A stretch of DNA of 64,000 nucleotides from Bugula neritina (taxonomy: Eukaryota > Animalia > Bryozoa), in assembly GCA_964035545.1 (NCBI GenBank), contig OZ037769.1, forward strand, positions 12,678,633-12,742,632. Direction: 5' to 3'. The position numbers were made by a program, and so were the translations under genes. The notes below the pieces were generated by a model. That model was not told where the DNA came from and did not search any database. It saw only the letters and a program-made list of their open reading frames with translations. Numbering within the stretch: position 1 is the first letter of the stretch; each line of letters begins with the position of its first letter. Shown here piece after piece: positions 9,900 to 63,615 of the stretch.

Positions 9900-11574
9900 G
9901 ATTACTTTTAAAAAAGGATGAGAAGATAAATCTAAAAGCAGATAATGATGATGTCATCACTTTTGGCCTTAATGTGAACTAAATAACAAGTAAAAAGTTA
10001 TTAAAATTATTTGCTCACTTAATTTATCTTCTAATTGGTGTTAGGTAGATGTTGGTTAATAGATTGAGTTTATGGATACATTGGCGCTTTGCTGATCATA
10101 TGGTATTGACTGTCAATAACATCTCATCTCCTTTATATGGTACATGTTCCAAGAATAGAGATATTATAATTTTTATTTGTCAACTTATTACGAATGTTGA
10201 CTAACACAGTTTATACTAACTTTTCACACTTTTCTTATGATTTAGCTGTGAAGTTCCACTTATAATGGCTTCACACATACCCATGACTTCAACTAAATCT
10301 ATCTCAAAATGAAATTTGTTTCAACTTGAACATATATCTGGCTGAAGCTTATTTATTGTGTTAATAATTTAATCTTAATTCAAGAGAATGCAAGCGATAT
10401 ATTGAATCAATGAAGCTTTTTTAGGTTGAAATGACTTTTCTTCCATTAGAACTGTGGCAATGAGCTTCGAACTAACATGTCTATAGTAATATGAAAATAA
10501 GAAAAGTTATTTTTTGCTAAAAGTACGAAAAGAATTCATTGTAGAAAACTCACACCTTCATTACTAAACATGGTGCACTTGTATTTTCATATTTACTTTT
10601 GAACAGGTGGAGTTTTAGATCAGCCTAGTTATTATAATATTTGTGATTGGGAAACTATAAATGTTGTTCGATAAATTTGTTGATTAAGAAATCAAAATAA
10701 GCTCATGAGCTTGAGTGTTTAACACTAACATATCTTTCAATAAATGATTAAACAGCCTTGTAAGAAGCTTCTTCATATACCCAATAGGAAGTAATAACCA
10801 AAGTTTCAATTGAGTATAGAATGTTTTAAAACTACTACAAACAAAATACAGTGAATTTCTTATTTCTATAAGTTTTATTGCAAAATAAACCTTTACTTAT
10901 ACAATATTTCTTTAATAGAAGCAGTTGCATCTTTTAGCTGTCATAATTAGGTTGAAAATTCTAATTGGAATTTTCTGGCAAAATATTTGTAATGAAACAA
11001 ATTGAGTGCTATAAATAAAATACATATACAGTTTGTTCGAGTTTCATAAATACTGTTGACGGAAAATGTAAAAAAAATAAACCAAAGGAGAGATTTATAA
11101 ATCTGCTAACTGTTATATAAAATTATTTAAAACTCTTAGCACAAAAGCTGGCTACAATGTCCAAATAAATAATTAGAAATAAATTAAAACTGTAAATTGA
11201 TTGTCATAGGAGACAAATTTAGATGTGACTTTGTGATTACCTAATTGACATATAACCACAACATCATTATATATGAAAAATAATATAACAATATAATAAT
11301 TTATTGAAAGCTTTCCTATTGCCTACAGATCATAGCATGGATCACTTAATATTGACTTTAAACTTTCTAATATTTGCTTTTCATTTAGCCTTAATTCTTA
11401 CTGCCTCATTTGGGTACCATAATCAAAGTCCCACAAAATCTGGTAGTACTTTGGCTTAGCCCTTGCGCGATCAAAGGGACATAAATGTCCTTTCAATTAG
11501 TGACTCTGTCCAGAAACGATTATTACACCTGTTTCATTGCTTCTGTAGCAGTCTCAGCTGATCTAGCAACGGGA

Positions 11575-14500
11575 CTATATGGTAAGCAAACTATCTAAAG
11601 AAGAGTATCCTGTACTAGTAGATGACACCATGCTGCCATTCAACTGTGTGCTGCTGCCGTCATGCCGCAGAGGTCCGGGAATACGTGTAGGTGTAGAGGA
11701 GTTGGAATGTCGCCGATCTTTACGTGGGGAGGCTTGAAACGAAGTTCTTCTAGGCTTGTCCTCTGAACAGGAAGGTCCAGGTGTGCTGGGTCGTGAATAA
11801 GACCGAGACCTAGCAGTGTTGGGTAAAGACATGTGTCTATTTCTAGGCAGAGACATGGTCTTGCCTGGAGATGCCCGAGAGGAAGAACTGTCTCTAGATT
11901 CGGAACGTCTGCTTGACATTGTACGACTGCGGGACTGGCTCCGTGGCCGAGAAGAATGAGGATTTTGACCCTGCAAACTGTCTTTCCACTTTTTCCTGAG
12001 ATCATATGATGGACTTTTGGAACGTTCTAGAAGGCTCTTACATGAAGCAGTGCCAAGACTGTGCCGGGGTTTTCCAAGGCTCTAAAGTCATATAACAGTA
12101 CATACAAAGTGTTGTTTATTAAAGAGTTAATTTATCACACAATCACTTCATTTCCTAGCTTTGCAACATCTAAATGATGGAAAAAGTTGCATCAAATAAA
12201 ACCGCAACCATAAGTTAATGCAAACTGCAACTACAAATTCATTCATTTGAACAATGTGAAGCTATGGAGGCACAGTGAATATAACAATGGAACTATAGAA
12301 GTACATGCAAACATGAAGCTGTCAAATACTGCTACCAGTTACTGCCAATATTTACATACATCTAAAAATATAAAGAGTAACAATCTCAACAGTGTCCGCT
12401 CTTCAACAACTTCAATCTAAATTTGTACATAAATGAGGATATTTGAAAGGAAATTATTAATTTTGACGTGCTCTCTAATATACTTGATAGAACAATTAGT
12501 CTGAGTACAACAAAAAGTTACCTGTTTAGATTGTTTTAAAAATGATTTGTTAGTTTTGTTTGGAGGAATGTTTAAGGATGGGGATGAGTCATGGGAGTCA
12601 TCAATCACGTGTCGCCCAGTGTCATCTCTAGTAATTAGTAAGTCACTGCTGAGAAGATCAGTGGAACCTGATCTGCTACTGTAACACATAGAAAGCACTT
12701 GACATCAAGTGTCATATAAGCTGCTATATATTGTGTAAGACTGAAATCTTATTTAACTTGCAGGAGAATAAAGCTCAAACCAAATCTATTAAACTTCCAA
12801 AAGGTTTAAAAGTCCCACTTTATCAGCCCTTATTTGTAAATTAAAAACTGGGACTCACACCGTGTCAAGTTTGTAAACCGTAGATTAACATATTATAAAA
12901 TATAAAGAAACAAAGGTGCTTAGAAAATATTATATTAATCAAGTATTGTTAAACCCTACATATATATAGTGCGTAGAAATACCACTCTCACTGTCCTATA
13001 ACACCAGATTCATTTTCCTGAGACACATGTTTTTAATATGTTTTTTTGTTAAGAAAATGTGAGATGATTTTTGTATCTCCCATGCAAGAGAGTAAGTAAT
13101 GTTACCTTTCTCAGTATCAATGATTTGCTTCAGAATTCAGTTTCTTATCTACTTGCAGACTCACCTTTTAGTCTTTAAAGGTGTTGACGAGGCATCAGGG
13201 GATTCTAGAGAGGCCACACTCTTTGAACGAACTAGCAATGACTTCTCTCTAAACAAATGGTTTTTATTATCACATTTATAGATGCTGTATATATTTGAGC
13301 TACACGTAATGATGTAAAGGCGTGTTACCTTCTTCATGGACTATACTAATATAACTAAATAAATAATGTTATGTTGATGAACTGACTATAATTTTCTATA
13401 GACATCAATGTAAAGAGCTTTAATACTGTAAAAGTGTTAATATTCTAATAGCACAGATAACAGACGTAATAATATATTCAACAAAAAATATGTAAAGTAT
13501 ATTCTTGCTTTTTAATATATGCATTGTAAAAAATAAATGAACCTCGAAACAAAAATTATTTTTATGGTATGCTAGATGATTTATAATATAGCATTAAATA
13601 AATAATGATTTTTATTATGTGCATATATTATGATATACTAAATAATGTAGCAAAACAGTTATTCAGATTAAAATATTTGTAAAAACAGCTAATTTATATT
13701 ATTAGTAAATTTCCGCAGTATGTTTGAAAGCTTTTAATTTTTTTATTGTTTAAATATGCTCTATAAACTACAAGATGCTGAAAAGGGCAGTACAGTTTGA
13801 CATTAAATCTAAATTCAGATATATTTGCTGTAACAATGCCATAGCCAGCCATATTACATTTAAGTTTTATGGTACACAACATGGAATGACTAAATTAAAG
13901 TCAATTGTGTACTACATACCTTTTATCAGATGGACGGTCTTTATGGTTAGAAACTAAAGATTTTTGGCTTGAGGAATTTAGACTGGAGGGTTTTGAATTT
14001 GAAGATTTGCGTGCCCTTGGCGCAGTTGTGTTGTGAGTTTCTATAACCAAAACAAAACTCAACATTTTATAATCTATATTACAATAAGATATGTGCTAAT
14101 ATGCAACAGTTAAAAATAAGTATTATATTACACTATATTTTGGATGCAGAATAATTACTAGTGGAACAAAAGTGATGTAATTTATTTTTGCTTCTATTTG
14201 AAGTTATATTTCCAGTATAATTTATTTGAGCAGGATAAAAGAAATAAAGATAAAACTATTAAATTCAGTTTTGCCAAAGATTATTAGAAAATCAATTCAA
14301 AATAAATATGTGAACTGATTACATAATGCGTTCAATTCCTTTTTATAATATATACTTCAGGAATAGTACAGCTCATAAACTTTAGCCTTAGACTCTAGAG
14401 AAAGAAGTTTGAAACCAAGTTTTAAATATATTTGAACATTTAGATAAAAATGTCAGCATCTATCAGCGTGAGAACCTACACTAGCATTCATATAAGCACT

Positions 14501-56585: not shown

Positions 56586-58750
<2,165 letters not shown>

Positions 58751-59612: not shown

Positions 59613-60682
59613 ATATATTATATGAAGAACACACTCAAAAATGCACCCATGCATTATACACGAATGTACACAAGGAACCTAAAATAGTAATGACTTAAAA
59701 CATTATATTTTAAAGTTTAAAGTGATCTAAACAAAAATGGTTGACTTTAATCATTAAGTGCTGCCACTGCTAAAAGGCCAGGCTACATTCGTTACATTTG
59801 CTGCCAGTAATAGCCCTATATTCATTATTGTAGTCTTTGTATTTGATTATGTTTGTCTCACAAATTAATTATATGTTTCAAGTGGTCTTCTGTAACTTAT
59901 GGTAACTCATCAGCAATATAGAGCAGGCACCTATTTTAGTAGACAACCTCAAGTTTTTGAAATGAAACGCACAAACTGCAGTTTAAGAATTTGCATGCAC
60001 CTGTGTGAGGAATTACTATTTATAGGTACATATCTAATATAAAAAATATTGTATTTAATGTTATCCATTTGTATGCAGTTGTTTTTGTTAAACATTGCAT
60101 GATAAAATAGTGGATTATTTAGGCAAACAGTGCATATATTATTGTAACTTGTGTGGTAAATTAGTTTGTATGCTTAATCTATTCATTTATAATTATCATA
60201 ACTATTAGTGATTTTAATTTTAAACTATACTTAAACTAAATGTTGTTGTAAGAAACAGAAAAGATTTTTAAAATTTTGCTTTGATTATGGTGTACAAAGT
60301 AGCAATTAATTTTCAACTAAACACGTAAATTGTTTTTATGGAAGTTACAAGCATGTATTTTAGGACTATAAGGTAACAAAGGTTTTTTGCAAGGTCACAA
60401 TTTTTAAAAATTCTGATGATGATGATTATTATTTTAAAGCAATGATATGAAATACCAAGTGCATGCAAGCAAAACGGGGAAAAAATAATAAAACCATACA
60501 TGTCATGACTATTAAACTAACAAAATAGTTTTTAAATAAATTTTATGACTTTATGGCTTTGCTAAATATCTGGTAAAAAGATTACATCACTCTTGTAACT
60601 ATTTCGGTAGTGTTTATCATTTATATGGGTTTGATATAAACTTGTTTGTTTGTGGTTTCCTTGGCTGAGGCTACCTCCATAA

Positions 60683-63162
60683 CTATATTTTCTTGCTTGA
60701 GGGTGGTAGAGTTTGCTTAACTTTTTTTTGCCACTTTACACTCCGCCCGCCATTCTGACTGCTAGGCTGCCATCGAGGCTTTACTTGAGGAGCAGTTCTC
60801 TTTGGCCCTCCACTGTTTCTGTAACCATTTTTGTGACTGGCATAAGGAATTACCTTTCTTGGTGGACCTCCTCGACGAGATTTGTAAACTCTGTTTCCAC
60901 TATTGGATACTCGAGGAGTTGGTTGACAATTCTGGTTTTTCAATACAGGACTGTTGTCTCCAAATACCTGAATTACTTTATCAACACTTTTTCTGCAAAT
61001 AGTTTGATTATTAAGCGAGCTATATTGAGGCGTTTCCAATCTTGCTTCACCTTTGTCACCATTAAAAAGAATGTAATAATTGTTTGGGAATTTCTGGCAT
61101 GTTTCCTTTTTTATTCCATCTAGCCTGATAGCATCAGCAAACTCCTTACAAGCTTTGGCAATGACTTTCCTACGTGTATTGCCTTCAACTTTTGGCTTAA
61201 CTTTGTTGTACAGCACATCAGGCGACTCTCCTCTTTCTAATTCTCTATTATAAAATGTCTTGTAAAGATAATACTTGACAACATCAAACTCCACCGCTGC
61301 TTTTTTTCTATCGTTGGCATGTTCTGGAAATAGTAAACTGTTTCGAGCAAGGCAGTCGATGAATAATTGTGCTGCAGAGTATTTATCATTGTCTTTTTTA
61401 GTGACACGAGGTCTTGAAAATTGTATGGCAATGGGGTTTTTAAAGAAATGATGTTTAGAAAAGTGCAAACGCGAGCCAGCTAAGTTTAGCCTGTCAGAGC
61501 TCTCATCATATCTGTAACATGGAATTCCAGCCATTTCCAGATACAACTCAGATACAGGAACTACCGTCTTCTTACCTTTATGCTCCTCTTCATACATTAC
61601 AATGAATCTGTTGTTATTTTTATTGTTTCTGGCCACAAAGTTAGCCATTTCACCAGCACACTCTACATATATTGAGTCTCCATATTTAGGCTTTTGGTTC
61701 TGGGAACACGGAATATAAGTAGAATAAATCAGAATAACTTTCCCTTTGTTAGCCGGGTTTTTCATCAGATTATTTGGAACTTTTTTGTTGGTTTTAGTGT
61801 CTATAATGGTTTCATCATCTCTGTACAGCATCTGTATCTCTGTGTGCACTTCTAACTGAGGTTTTAGCAAAGCATCAATTCTTGTTCTTGTTGGCAGCTC
61901 ACATATTTTATTTAAACATCTCGGTGAACAGTTTGTTGCGTCACCTTTTACGTAATTTTTATAAAGATTGGTTTTAGGGTCAACATTATATTTCAATTTA
62001 AGTCTTCCGTGTGAATCTCTTTCAACATCTAAGGGAGTTGCCAGTACCCATTGATTAATTTTTCCAGTAGCGACCTGGTCTTTAAATGTTTTGAAGTGTT
62101 TAAAAGCTGTTTTGAGTTGGTTCTTAACCAAAGGCGTGTCCAGCTGGGCAAAAAGCTGATTAACTCGATCGGCATGTGTTTCCAGCCTAGCTGGAGCAGA
62201 ATTTGGTTTGGGTGGTTTTGGCTTTGGAAGACCAGGATTTTTCAGTGGTTTTATGATTGGTTTGACATCTTGATGATTTACTACTGAGACATGGGGAGAC
62301 TTCTGTGGATCTGAAAGATGGGGAGAGTGATGTGGATTATTATGGGATTCAGGATGAGGAACTCCCTTCTGCTTTATGTTGGAGTGAACTGGCATAGAAT
62401 TTGGTTTTTCTTTGCCTGCCTGGCTTGAATAAACTTCCAAGACTATGAGTAAACATATTACCTGAAACAGAAAAAAAGAACCTACACTTTATAGTAAGCT
62501 AATATTTTGACTAATTTGGCAGAACCCAGATATAGATGTATATACGTAGATAAAAGTTACAATTGCTTTTGAGGAATAGGGTCACTACCTTAGTATGCAT
62601 CAGCAAATTATGACCTCAGAACTTCTAAACATTTACTACACGGGTAAATTTATGTATTGATTCTATTTATGCGTAGCAAAAAAAACTGAGAGGGCGGTCT
62701 GCAACATTTAAGTGAACTGTCATTGTCATATAAGCTAGATAAATACATACTGATCGTAATGGAAAAGTCAACGGTTTTCATATCTCAATTTATGAAAAAA
62801 TTAAAAGAAAACTTAAGAGAATAAAGCAAAAGTCGAAAAAACCTTAATTATTCAGTTGTATTTGTTAAAATTTCATTAATTTAGGATTGTTGAAATGATT
62901 TCCCTTAAAGAACATAATAAAATGAAATAGCTGGAAACTTTAAAAATGCTGTTATGAAAATATCTGCTGTTTCAATAAAAAATACAGTCGACAAAGATTT
63001 TAGATATTTCAACAGCTGCCTAATATATTATAGAGGTATAAACACTTCACCTAAGAAGAATTTATATTGAAGTGCTAATACTTACGCCCATTAACATGTT
63101 GAAATATAAACTTATACTGCAAAACAAAATAATATACTTACAGAAAATTTCTTGGCTGCCAT
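60683..63162 (-). CDS. Secreted Zn-dependent deaminase-fold protein (SNAD / AID-APOBEC-like), 599 aa
   Basis: Exon 1 (63162-63142, ATG GCA GCC AAG AAA TTT TCT, then GTAAGT) splices in phase 0 to the TTTCAG acceptor and exon 2 (62461-60683), giving MAAKKFSVICLLIVLEVYSSQAG... (signal peptide). Motifs: NQWVLA, NYVKG, H-T-E (61846-61838), VILIYSTYIPC (Cys at 61708-61706) x15 C (61660-61658), FIVMY, LEMAGI. Confidence 0.78.
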
Positions 63163-63615
63163 TTTGAGCTTCAGAAAGCAAGCACCACAAATTGAAAGTG
63201 TAGTGCATGTTGGTACAATAATTCCATTTCTTTAAATAGTAAATTTTTGGATGTGGAATTATTATGCGTAGCATTTTGCATCTCAAAACTGAAGCACTGC
63301 AAGCGTTTGTTTTGTTTTGTTAAATTGTTATGCTCACAGCAATGCTATAATAATTTCTCATAAACTTACATAAGTTTGAACAAGCTGAATATACCCTTAT
63401 TTTTATGAAAAATGCTTATTTCAAGCTGTTTTAAAATGCATGCAGTTATTGGTTTATAGATTACAACGTTTAATATAATTATGCCTAGCTTTTTCATGAA
63501 TTTATAAATTTAAAAAAAAACACATTAACAAAGCTCTAAAATGTTAGATTAGTCATTTTTGATATATTTTATACTCTTAAAGCAGTCATAAGATAGGGGC
63601 TGATGCCATTTTAAT

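Follow-up and report, generated by a model that had tools for sequence, protein, structure and literature searches.

Among the AID/APOBEC-like deaminases (AADs), SNAD1–3 are specific to vertebrates and SNAD4 to sponges, and bryozoans are not listed as a source of either; bacterial toxin deaminases are considered the ancestral source of AADs (Krishnan et al. 2018, PMC5889660). The canonical AAD motif reads HxE-x25-30-PC-x2-4-C (PMC11004436). Our literature searches found no report of a bryozoan AID/APOBEC. Here we describe a deaminase gene on the minus strand of a 64,000-nt stretch of a bugulid bryozoan genome (G000, a 216-Mb assembly, C5:12678633–12742632), called the window throughout, to which all position numbers refer unless a contig is named. 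The gene is intact, spliced, expressed in its orthologue and conserved, and its product has a deaminase fold in which the catalytic residues are kept. We consider it likely that this two-exon gene, with a product of ~600 residues, represents a new lophotrochozoan clade of secreted AADs.

How does the locus compare with the described systems? It resembles SNAD1 and SNAD2 in several respects: (i) the deaminase domain, with its HxE and PC...C motifs, comes after a predicted N-terminal signal peptide; (ii) there is lineage-specific expansion in tandem arrays; and (iii) searches by shape, profile and language model lead to the same families. Thus, the best named match in an ESM Atlas shape search was the chordate SNAD1/SNAD2 cluster (template-modelling (TM) score 0.67 by target, 172 residues, root-mean-square deviation 3.2 Å), the single, weak Pfam match of the exon-2 protein was SNAD1 (E 0.055, residues 204–321), and language-model neighbours were all AID/APOBEC-like, with P0026, a distant member of the family, falling to SNAD1/2 clusters at 0.91. 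In contrast to SNAD1/2, the bryozoan gene scores below the Pfam cut-off (13.8 versus 25 bits) and lacks the C...CxxC...C cluster after strand 5 (Cys315 is not conserved), and its family has a loop-5 insert of 9–15 residues and a helical domain of ~185 residues that are absent from descriptions of SNAD1/2. The strand features of SNAD1/2 were also not seen in the model, where strands 44–54 and 60–64 are linked by a short turn and one extra strand (230–233) follows strand 5 before helices begin. Finally, the family occurs in Bryozoa and probably in Mollusca, whereas SNAD1–3 are vertebrate-only (PMC5889660). Because the CxxC after strand 5 is missing, the Pfam score is sub-threshold and an extra domain is present, sequence and model together place the gene outside SNAD1/2 as defined, in what appears to be a separate clade.

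The secreted AADs of sponges (SNAD4; PF18750) and dictyosteliids are similar in that they occur outside vertebrates, carry signal peptides, as predicted here, and have expanded in single lineages; the dictyosteliid proteins also have a distinct Cys-containing C-terminal domain of their own. Several members of the bryozoan family match SNAD4 weakly (E 0.005–0.05), but all of these matches are sub-threshold (at most 17.4 versus 27 bits). With the classical AID/APOBEC proteins (APOBEC3A/B/G/F/H and AID) the bryozoan protein shares the fold and the order of its elements, including HxE on helix 2 and PC...C on loop 5 and helix 3, at 12–15% sequence identity. Unlike it, the classical proteins are intracellular, have PC-x2-4-C and carry neither a signal peptide nor a helical C-terminal domain; their helices 5 and 6 are apparently replaced or absorbed by the extra domain in the bryozoan gene. 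The bacterial polymorphic-toxin deaminases (DddA and the cytidine deaminase toxins of type VI secretion systems) are comparable as exported deaminase effectors aimed at other cells. The structural likeness is weaker (Z 4.3–4.8 for DddA, DddB and a P. syringae toxin), and the bryozoan gene differs in being eukaryotic, with a spliceosomal intron, a predicted endoplasmic reticulum (ER) signal peptide and no immunity partner.

The preliminary description of this DNA had proposed a deaminase fold, and such a fold was recovered by Foldseek, VIA-align, an exhaustive VIA search and the ESM Atlas. Searches and folds took the exons separately, and the joined protein was used only for hydropathy and candidate-exon scans. 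An AlphaFold model of residues 95–520 reached a mean predicted local distance difference test score (pLDDT) of 84.3 and a predicted TM score (pTM) of 0.89. When it was compared with the PDB by Foldseek, APOBEC3 or AID filled the first 38 places and most of the top 50, with probabilities of ~1.0. VIA alignment to APOBEC3A gave Z 9.5, with 142–147 residues aligned over the whole APOBEC3A domain (model residues 31–239), and in an exhaustive VIA search of 48,161 PDB representatives every chain with Z of at least 5 (37 of 37) belonged to the deaminase superfamily. Consistent with the model, in which DSSP assigns strand 191–198, helix 207–216 and strand 221–225, the best structural matches in VIA were members of the helix-4 division (TadA/ADAR/AID-APOBEC); the helix between strands 4 and 5 marks this division in the predicted structure. 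The ESM Atlas search also returned a cluster of a 427-aa molluscan 'hypothetical protein' that aligns over residues 1–335.

Does the fold point to an editor of nucleic acids? By VIA geometry, Rib2 (Z 8.4), a phage dCMP (deoxycytidine monophosphate) deaminase (8.2) and RibD (8.0) are level with AID (8.4) in the exhaustive search, RibD reached Z 9.0 against 9.5 for APOBEC3A in VIA-align, and the ESM Atlas also gave a dCMP_cyt_deam_1 cluster (TM 0.60). Because AID, Rib2 and dCMP deaminase tie in this way, a free-nucleotide substrate keeps some belief: instead of editing nucleic acids, the secreted protein could act on free nucleotides, on nucleosides or on a small metabolite, with chemistry like that of dCMP, RibD/Rib2 or guanine deaminases, and might, for example, clear a toxic metabolite or adjust the nucleotide pool outside the cell. 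We find this improbable. When 21 family members were scanned singly, their deaminase Pfam matches were confined to SNAD1, SNAD4, NAD1, NAD2, APOBEC_N and APOBEC4, all sub-threshold (up to 17.4 bits for members other than this gene), and no dCMP- or CDA-type (cytidine deaminase) family appeared in any of the 21, even at E≤1–10. The Foldseek ranking, which uses 3Di letters and sequence, and the best named shape match (SNAD1/2) both argue against a metabolic enzyme, as do the very basic tail and the lineage-specific expansion, which typify nucleic-acid-directed effectors. The earlier assignment to SNAD- or AID/APOBEC-like deaminases thus stands in the structure and in weak Pfam matches to AADs only; it has to be qualified in that sequence scores stay below threshold, the gene is not a SNAD1/2 and VIA geometry is tied.

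We turn to the active site, for which deaminase residues are counted in exon-2 numbering. The motifs previously listed (NQWVLA, NYVKG, HTE, VILIYSTYIPC, ECAGEM, FIVMY and LEMAGI) are all present in that order, with exactly 15 residues between the two cysteines. In a 30-row alignment of homologues, with identity down to 20%, His206, Cys252 and Cys268 are invariant, whereas Glu208 and Pro251 are each found in 29 rows; P0025 is the single row without the catalytic Glu. The predicted placement is also as had been anticipated: HTE lies at the N-terminus of helix 113–119 of the model, PC closes strand 148–155 and the second Cys stands at the N-terminus of helix 174–185, so that in the model the motifs are positioned on canonical deaminase elements. 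Two further residues, Asn75 and Tyr196 in core numbering, the latter closing strand 4, are at least 90% conserved and are candidates for the loop-3 Asn and the loop-7 aromatic residue of AADs (PMC5889660). In APOBEC3A these two AAD residues are Asn57 and Tyr130, which touch the target cytosine.

The classical spacing is not kept. From Glu208 to Pro251 the distance is 42 residues, because a 12-residue loop-4 insert (DDETIIDTKTNK...), found in this sub-lineage only, lengthens it, and 15 residues separate the cysteines. The latter spacer measures 15 residues here as well as in the orthologue and the neighbouring copy L009, 13 in the paralogues of the array described below and 9–11 in distant members. 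The long loop-5 insert therefore appears, from the alignment, to be a family trait (9–15 residues) and no peculiarity of this gene. In APOBEC3A, loop 5 is among the loops that touch the base beside the target. PC-x15-C had been called unusual: the spacer is real, but it is the long end of a family-wide range, and loop-5 inserts that keep the Zn-ligand cysteines are known from other AAD clades (PMC5889660).

Could the scaffold be catalytically dead and bind a ligand, such as nucleic acid, in the way suggested for APOBEC2 and APOBEC4? Neither the loop-5 insert (15 residues) nor the distance from HxE to PC (42 residues) fits the canonical motif (PMC11004436), the insert is modelled poorly (pLDDT 59, model residues 161–170), and activity has been demonstrated for no secreted AAD (PMC11004436). 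Against this, His, both Cys and Glu are kept family-wide to 20% identity, with Glu lost in P0025 alone; the ratio of nonsynonymous to synonymous substitution rates (dN/dS) is lowest in the deaminase domain; and the other AAD clades with loop-5 inserts keep their Zn-ligand cysteines (PMC5889660). We regard a non-enzymatic protein as very improbable.

At 61591–61828, just downstream of the HxE codons and including the PC and loop-5 codons, the DNA run X3, which covers the deaminase-gene stretch and probably comes from the source sample, has two contigs of equal length and depth, one identical to the window and the other with 11 differences (4.6%). They may reflect allelic divergence or a collapsed close paralogue.

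The open reading frame (ORF) list gives the gene as a mechanical ORF of 585 aa at 60683..62440 on the minus strand, starting at TTG. As already noted in the preliminary description, the frame stays open beyond this TTG up to a pyrimidine tract and TTTCAG, where exon 2 begins, and a 21-nt, phase-0 exon lies upstream: ATGGCAGCCAAGAAATTTTCT, followed by GTAAGT, encodes MAAKKFS in frame with VICLLIVLEVYSSQAG. To this reading of the sequence RNA can be added. The RNA-Seq runs X1 and X2 (the RNA label is the records' own) belong to a 'symbiont metagenome' study, and their contigs are 80–95% alike to the window and thus come from a relative. They span 60554–62460. One X2 contig matches 61039–62460 and then 63144–63172 (29 letters), with three letters (TAA, plus strand) between the two parts; provided that the relative differs at the three junction bases, this joint corresponds to removal of the intron. 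The public B. neritina locus L015 (VXIV02002973.1, gene at 10001–11746) fits this reading: its 21-nt exon CTCAAAATGGCAACCAAGAAAGTTTTT, coding MATKKVF, is followed by GTAAGT, its acceptor is TTTTAG followed by ATAATATGTTTGCTC, and its junction letters TT/A are the reverse complement of the TAA in the X2 contig. Mini-exon, donor and acceptor are thus kept in two genomes that are 86% identical at the locus, and they are used in RNA. Splicing of the deaminase gene is real, at least in the orthologue, whose transcripts use the leader exon that had been predicted; RNA across the 63142/62461 junction is seen in the relative.

After splicing, the N-terminus reads as a basic n-region (KK) followed by a hydrophobic core and by small residues in the c-region. 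On the joined exons, the 9-residue Kyte-Doolittle mean peaked at 3.4 over SVICLLIVL and fell below 0 past SSQAG. Composition and hydropathy make a signal peptide a well-founded inference, which is strengthened because hydrophobic leaders recur at the N-termini of all paralogues and of the distant full-length relatives. An intracellular protein with its true start elsewhere is nonetheless what public B. neritina annotation implies: KAF6021720.1 ('hypothetical protein EB796_019972'), the product of L015, starts at an internal Met (MPARFD) and has no leader. A script scan also found two further in-frame ATG mini-exon candidates upstream of exon 2, and the leader was judged by its composition. Yet an RNA-Seq contig joins the predicted exon 1 to exon 2 exactly, exon 1 and both splice sites are kept between two genomes, ahead of the internal Met the frame remains open and encodes a conserved, hydrophobic stretch, and paralogues and distant members all start with hydrophobic leaders; we hold a non-secreted product to be scarcely credible. 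Prokaryote-style ORF calls and the public annotation both miss the signal peptide because the intron splits the leader after seven codons, and the family is annotated as a non-secreted 'hypothetical protein' because the KAF6021720.1 model misses the 21-nt first exon.

Within the intron, ~50 nt at about 62836–62885 match very many contigs of X1, X2 and X3 whose flanks differ from one another, with a summed depth of 5526 against ~110 in X3. These letters are a short repeat of high copy number that probably belongs to a mobile element.

In addition to the deaminase domain, the protein has a mostly helical C-terminal domain of ~185 residues that is kept down to the distant tier of relatives and has conserved Cys370, Cys438, Cys489 and Cys512. 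It was modelled with a pLDDT of 81.7 when folded alone, and the pTM of the two-domain model (0.89) suggests that it packs against the deaminase domain. No relative of it was found in the PDB by Foldseek (best E 0.85) or in BFVD (best E 1.1), Pfam gave no match, and in the exhaustive VIA search the highest scores, for the FADD death domain and a sperm axoneme protein (best Z 4.9), are at background level. As modelled, the domain is thus without a known fold relative in PDB, BFVD or Pfam. Two low-complexity segments complete the protein. The linker (78 residues; 17 Pro and 8 His; isoelectric point (pI) 10.1) is confined to this gene and its B. neritina counterpart, with part of it also in the neighbour L009; the tail (77 residues; 20 Lys and Arg, no Asp or Glu; pI 12.0) is strongly basic, and basic RG tails also occur in some paralogues, such as at the C-terminus of L001. 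The claim that the protein is about twice the size of a deaminase domain was borne out, the causes being the conserved extra domain together with the two lineage-specific low-complexity segments. Compared with the B. neritina gene, dN/dS increases from the deaminase domain through the helical domain and the tail to the linker (Table 1); these values are rough, from a single pair with dS ~0.18. A pseudogene was ruled out by the intact frame and by the dN/dS of the deaminase domain.

Table 1. Features of the deaminase gene in the window, listed from its 5' to its 3' end
Feature	Position	Strand	Evidence
Exon 1 coding part, ATG + 6 codons (MAAKKFS), basic n-region	63142..63162	-	Sequence; RNA-Seq of the relative; L015
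GTAAGT donor of the deaminase gene	63141-63136	-	Sequence
Intron, 680 nt, GTAAGT...pyrimidine tract...TTTCAG	62462..63141	-	Sequence; spliced contig of run X2
Exon 2, 592 codons + TAG stop at 60685-60683	60683..62461	-	Sequence; RNA-Seq contigs of X1 and X2
Rest of predicted signal peptide, core VICLLIVLEVY, c-region SSQAG (residues 1-16)	62414..62461	-	Hydropathy
Pro/His/Lys-rich low-complexity linker, residues 17-94	62180..62413	-	Composition; dN/dS 1.10
Deaminase domain, predicted AID/APOBEC-like, helix-4 division, residues 95-330	61472..62179	-	Model; structure searches; dN/dS 0.28
HTE: His206 (predicted Zn ligand), Glu208 (predicted proton shuttle)	61838..61846	-	Conservation; model
Pro251-Cys252: first predicted Zn-ligand Cys, end of strand 3	61706..61711	-	Conservation; model
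Loop-5 insert, 15 residues between Cys252 and Cys268 (SQNQKPKYGDSIYVE)	61661..61705	-	Alignment
Cys268 (in EC, Glu267-Cys268): second predicted Zn-ligand Cys, N-terminus of helix 3	61658..61660	-	Conservation; model
Conserved C-terminal helical domain, residues 331-515	60917..61471	-	Alignments A2 and A3; model pLDDT 81.7; dN/dS 0.57
Strongly basic low-complexity tail, R/G/P/K-rich, residues 516-592	60686..60916	-	Composition; dN/dS 0.79

How widespread is the family? Homology searches found a B. neritina protein with 83% identity, a set at 30–40% identity (370–660 aa, including B. neritina KAF6033823.1) and a distant tier (P0014–P0026) at 19–23% identity; none of these homologues has a precomputed Pfam domain. 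The contigs that encode P0016 and P0026 are metagenome contigs, and the link to Mollusca comes from ESM Atlas cluster labels, by which the family is probably also molluscan. When the domain profile A4 was used in a second search by word index, no further relatives appeared. The Pfam SNAD1 model had no match in the six-frame translated genome, and neither had the control, so this search is uninformative.

In the genome itself, the family profile matched 13 places, mostly in one array at C5:14.06–14.11 Mb with eight to nine copies (L001–L005, L007, L008 and L010–L012). L005 and L008 have one in-frame TAA each near the 3' end, and L010–L012 are pieces of one broken copy. Several array copies have basic RG-rich ends. 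The exon-2 frames of the array copies all begin mid-leader, which suggests that these copies share the split signal peptide; for L007, a 21-nt candidate first exon was located. L009, 69% identical, lies ~17 kb from the deaminase gene. With about ten copies on C5, the family is expanded in this genome. On C2 (32909516–32909773) there is an isolated core match, L013 (profile positions 123–220, E 2.7e-9, in a 197-aa open frame), which may be a more divergent member or a fragment.

A quick maximum-likelihood tree grouped the deaminase gene with P0001 and L009 (Shimodaira–Hasegawa-like approximate likelihood ratio test (SH-aLRT) support 99), as sister to the array-type copies, in a bugulid clade (100). 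Sequences of this genome and B. neritina-like sequences form one-to-one pairs, and the duplications would therefore be older than the split from the B. neritina lineage. Against the B. neritina assembly GCA_010799875.2, the deaminase locus shows ~86% DNA identity and dS ~0.18. Either this genome and that assembly belong to different lineages within the B. neritina species complex, or the comparison was between genes other than strict orthologues.

Bacterial contamination or recent transfer was ruled out by the spliceosomal intron, the eukaryotic flanks (33% guanine plus cytosine) and orthologues in a second bryozoan assembly. The gene also has a retroelement copy as its neighbour: 2 kb downstream, a 505-aa open frame at 57101–58618 on the minus strand matches the reverse transcriptase family RVT_1 (E 6e-32).

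Several observations weigh against a new clade of secreted AADs. The RNA evidence is from a related lineage (~86% DNA identity), other than the source genome; the signal peptide is predicted from composition, and its h-region includes a Glu; the Foldseek E-values are marginal (best 1.5e-3, the others worse), and VIA geometry by itself puts AID no higher than Rib2 and close to dCMP deaminase. No Pfam AID/APOBEC model reached its gathering score, and no deaminase turned up when PDB sequences were searched with the profiles A1, A2 and A4; the only match, TRAPPC4 at E 1.3, was taken as chance. Finally, activity has so far been demonstrated for no SNAD (PMC11004436).

What would a secreted AAD of this kind do? 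In the mechanism that we propose, exon 1 would give the Met and the basic n-region, and the start of exon 2 the hydrophobic core, of a split signal peptide through which the protein would enter the ER, with cleavage probably near SSQA/G. The mature protein would then consist of a disordered linker, a Zn-dependent deaminase domain closest to AID/APOBEC-like deaminases, especially the secreted SNAD1/2 branch, the family-specific helical domain and the very basic tail. Zn would be held by His206, Cys252 and Cys268, with Glu208 as proton shuttle, and the 15-residue insert would enlarge loop 5. Because of the AAD affinities, the conserved Tyr196 and Asn75 and the polybasic tail, we infer that the enzyme most likely deaminates cytosine hydrolytically, with single-stranded DNA or RNA as its substrate. 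The reaction would take place extracellularly or in a compartment of the secretory or vesicular system, and polyanions or the target would be bound by the basic tail and possibly also by the helical domain. A role as an extracellular or vesicular effector in defence or competition is suggested because the family is expanded in a lineage-specific manner and evolves fast.

A bolder form of this proposal is that the family is a protostome branch of secreted AADs and serves as a delivered toxin or an antiviral mutator. Once secreted, the enzyme would be bound to foreign cells or virions, and carried into them, by its helical domain and polybasic tail, and the targets could be larval settlers, fouling competitors, microbes or viruses; the enlarged loop 5 might confer an unusual target context, possibly with a substrate that is not single-stranded DNA cytosine. 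We think this rather unlikely. If true, the family would be a eukaryotic counterpart to the polymorphic-toxin deaminases of bacteria and would provide base editing with a new scaffold.

Whatever its targets, the family would offer a compact set of natural variants for biochemistry, with loop-5 inserts of 9, 13 and 15 residues, with or without basic tails and with a domain of unknown fold. Secreted AADs have so far been described only from vertebrates (SNAD1–3), sponges (SNAD4) and slime moulds. Protostomes are missing from this list, and a well-conserved, transcribed and expanded bryozoan family with probable relatives in molluscs would close that gap and favour an origin of secreted deaminases early in metazoan evolution.

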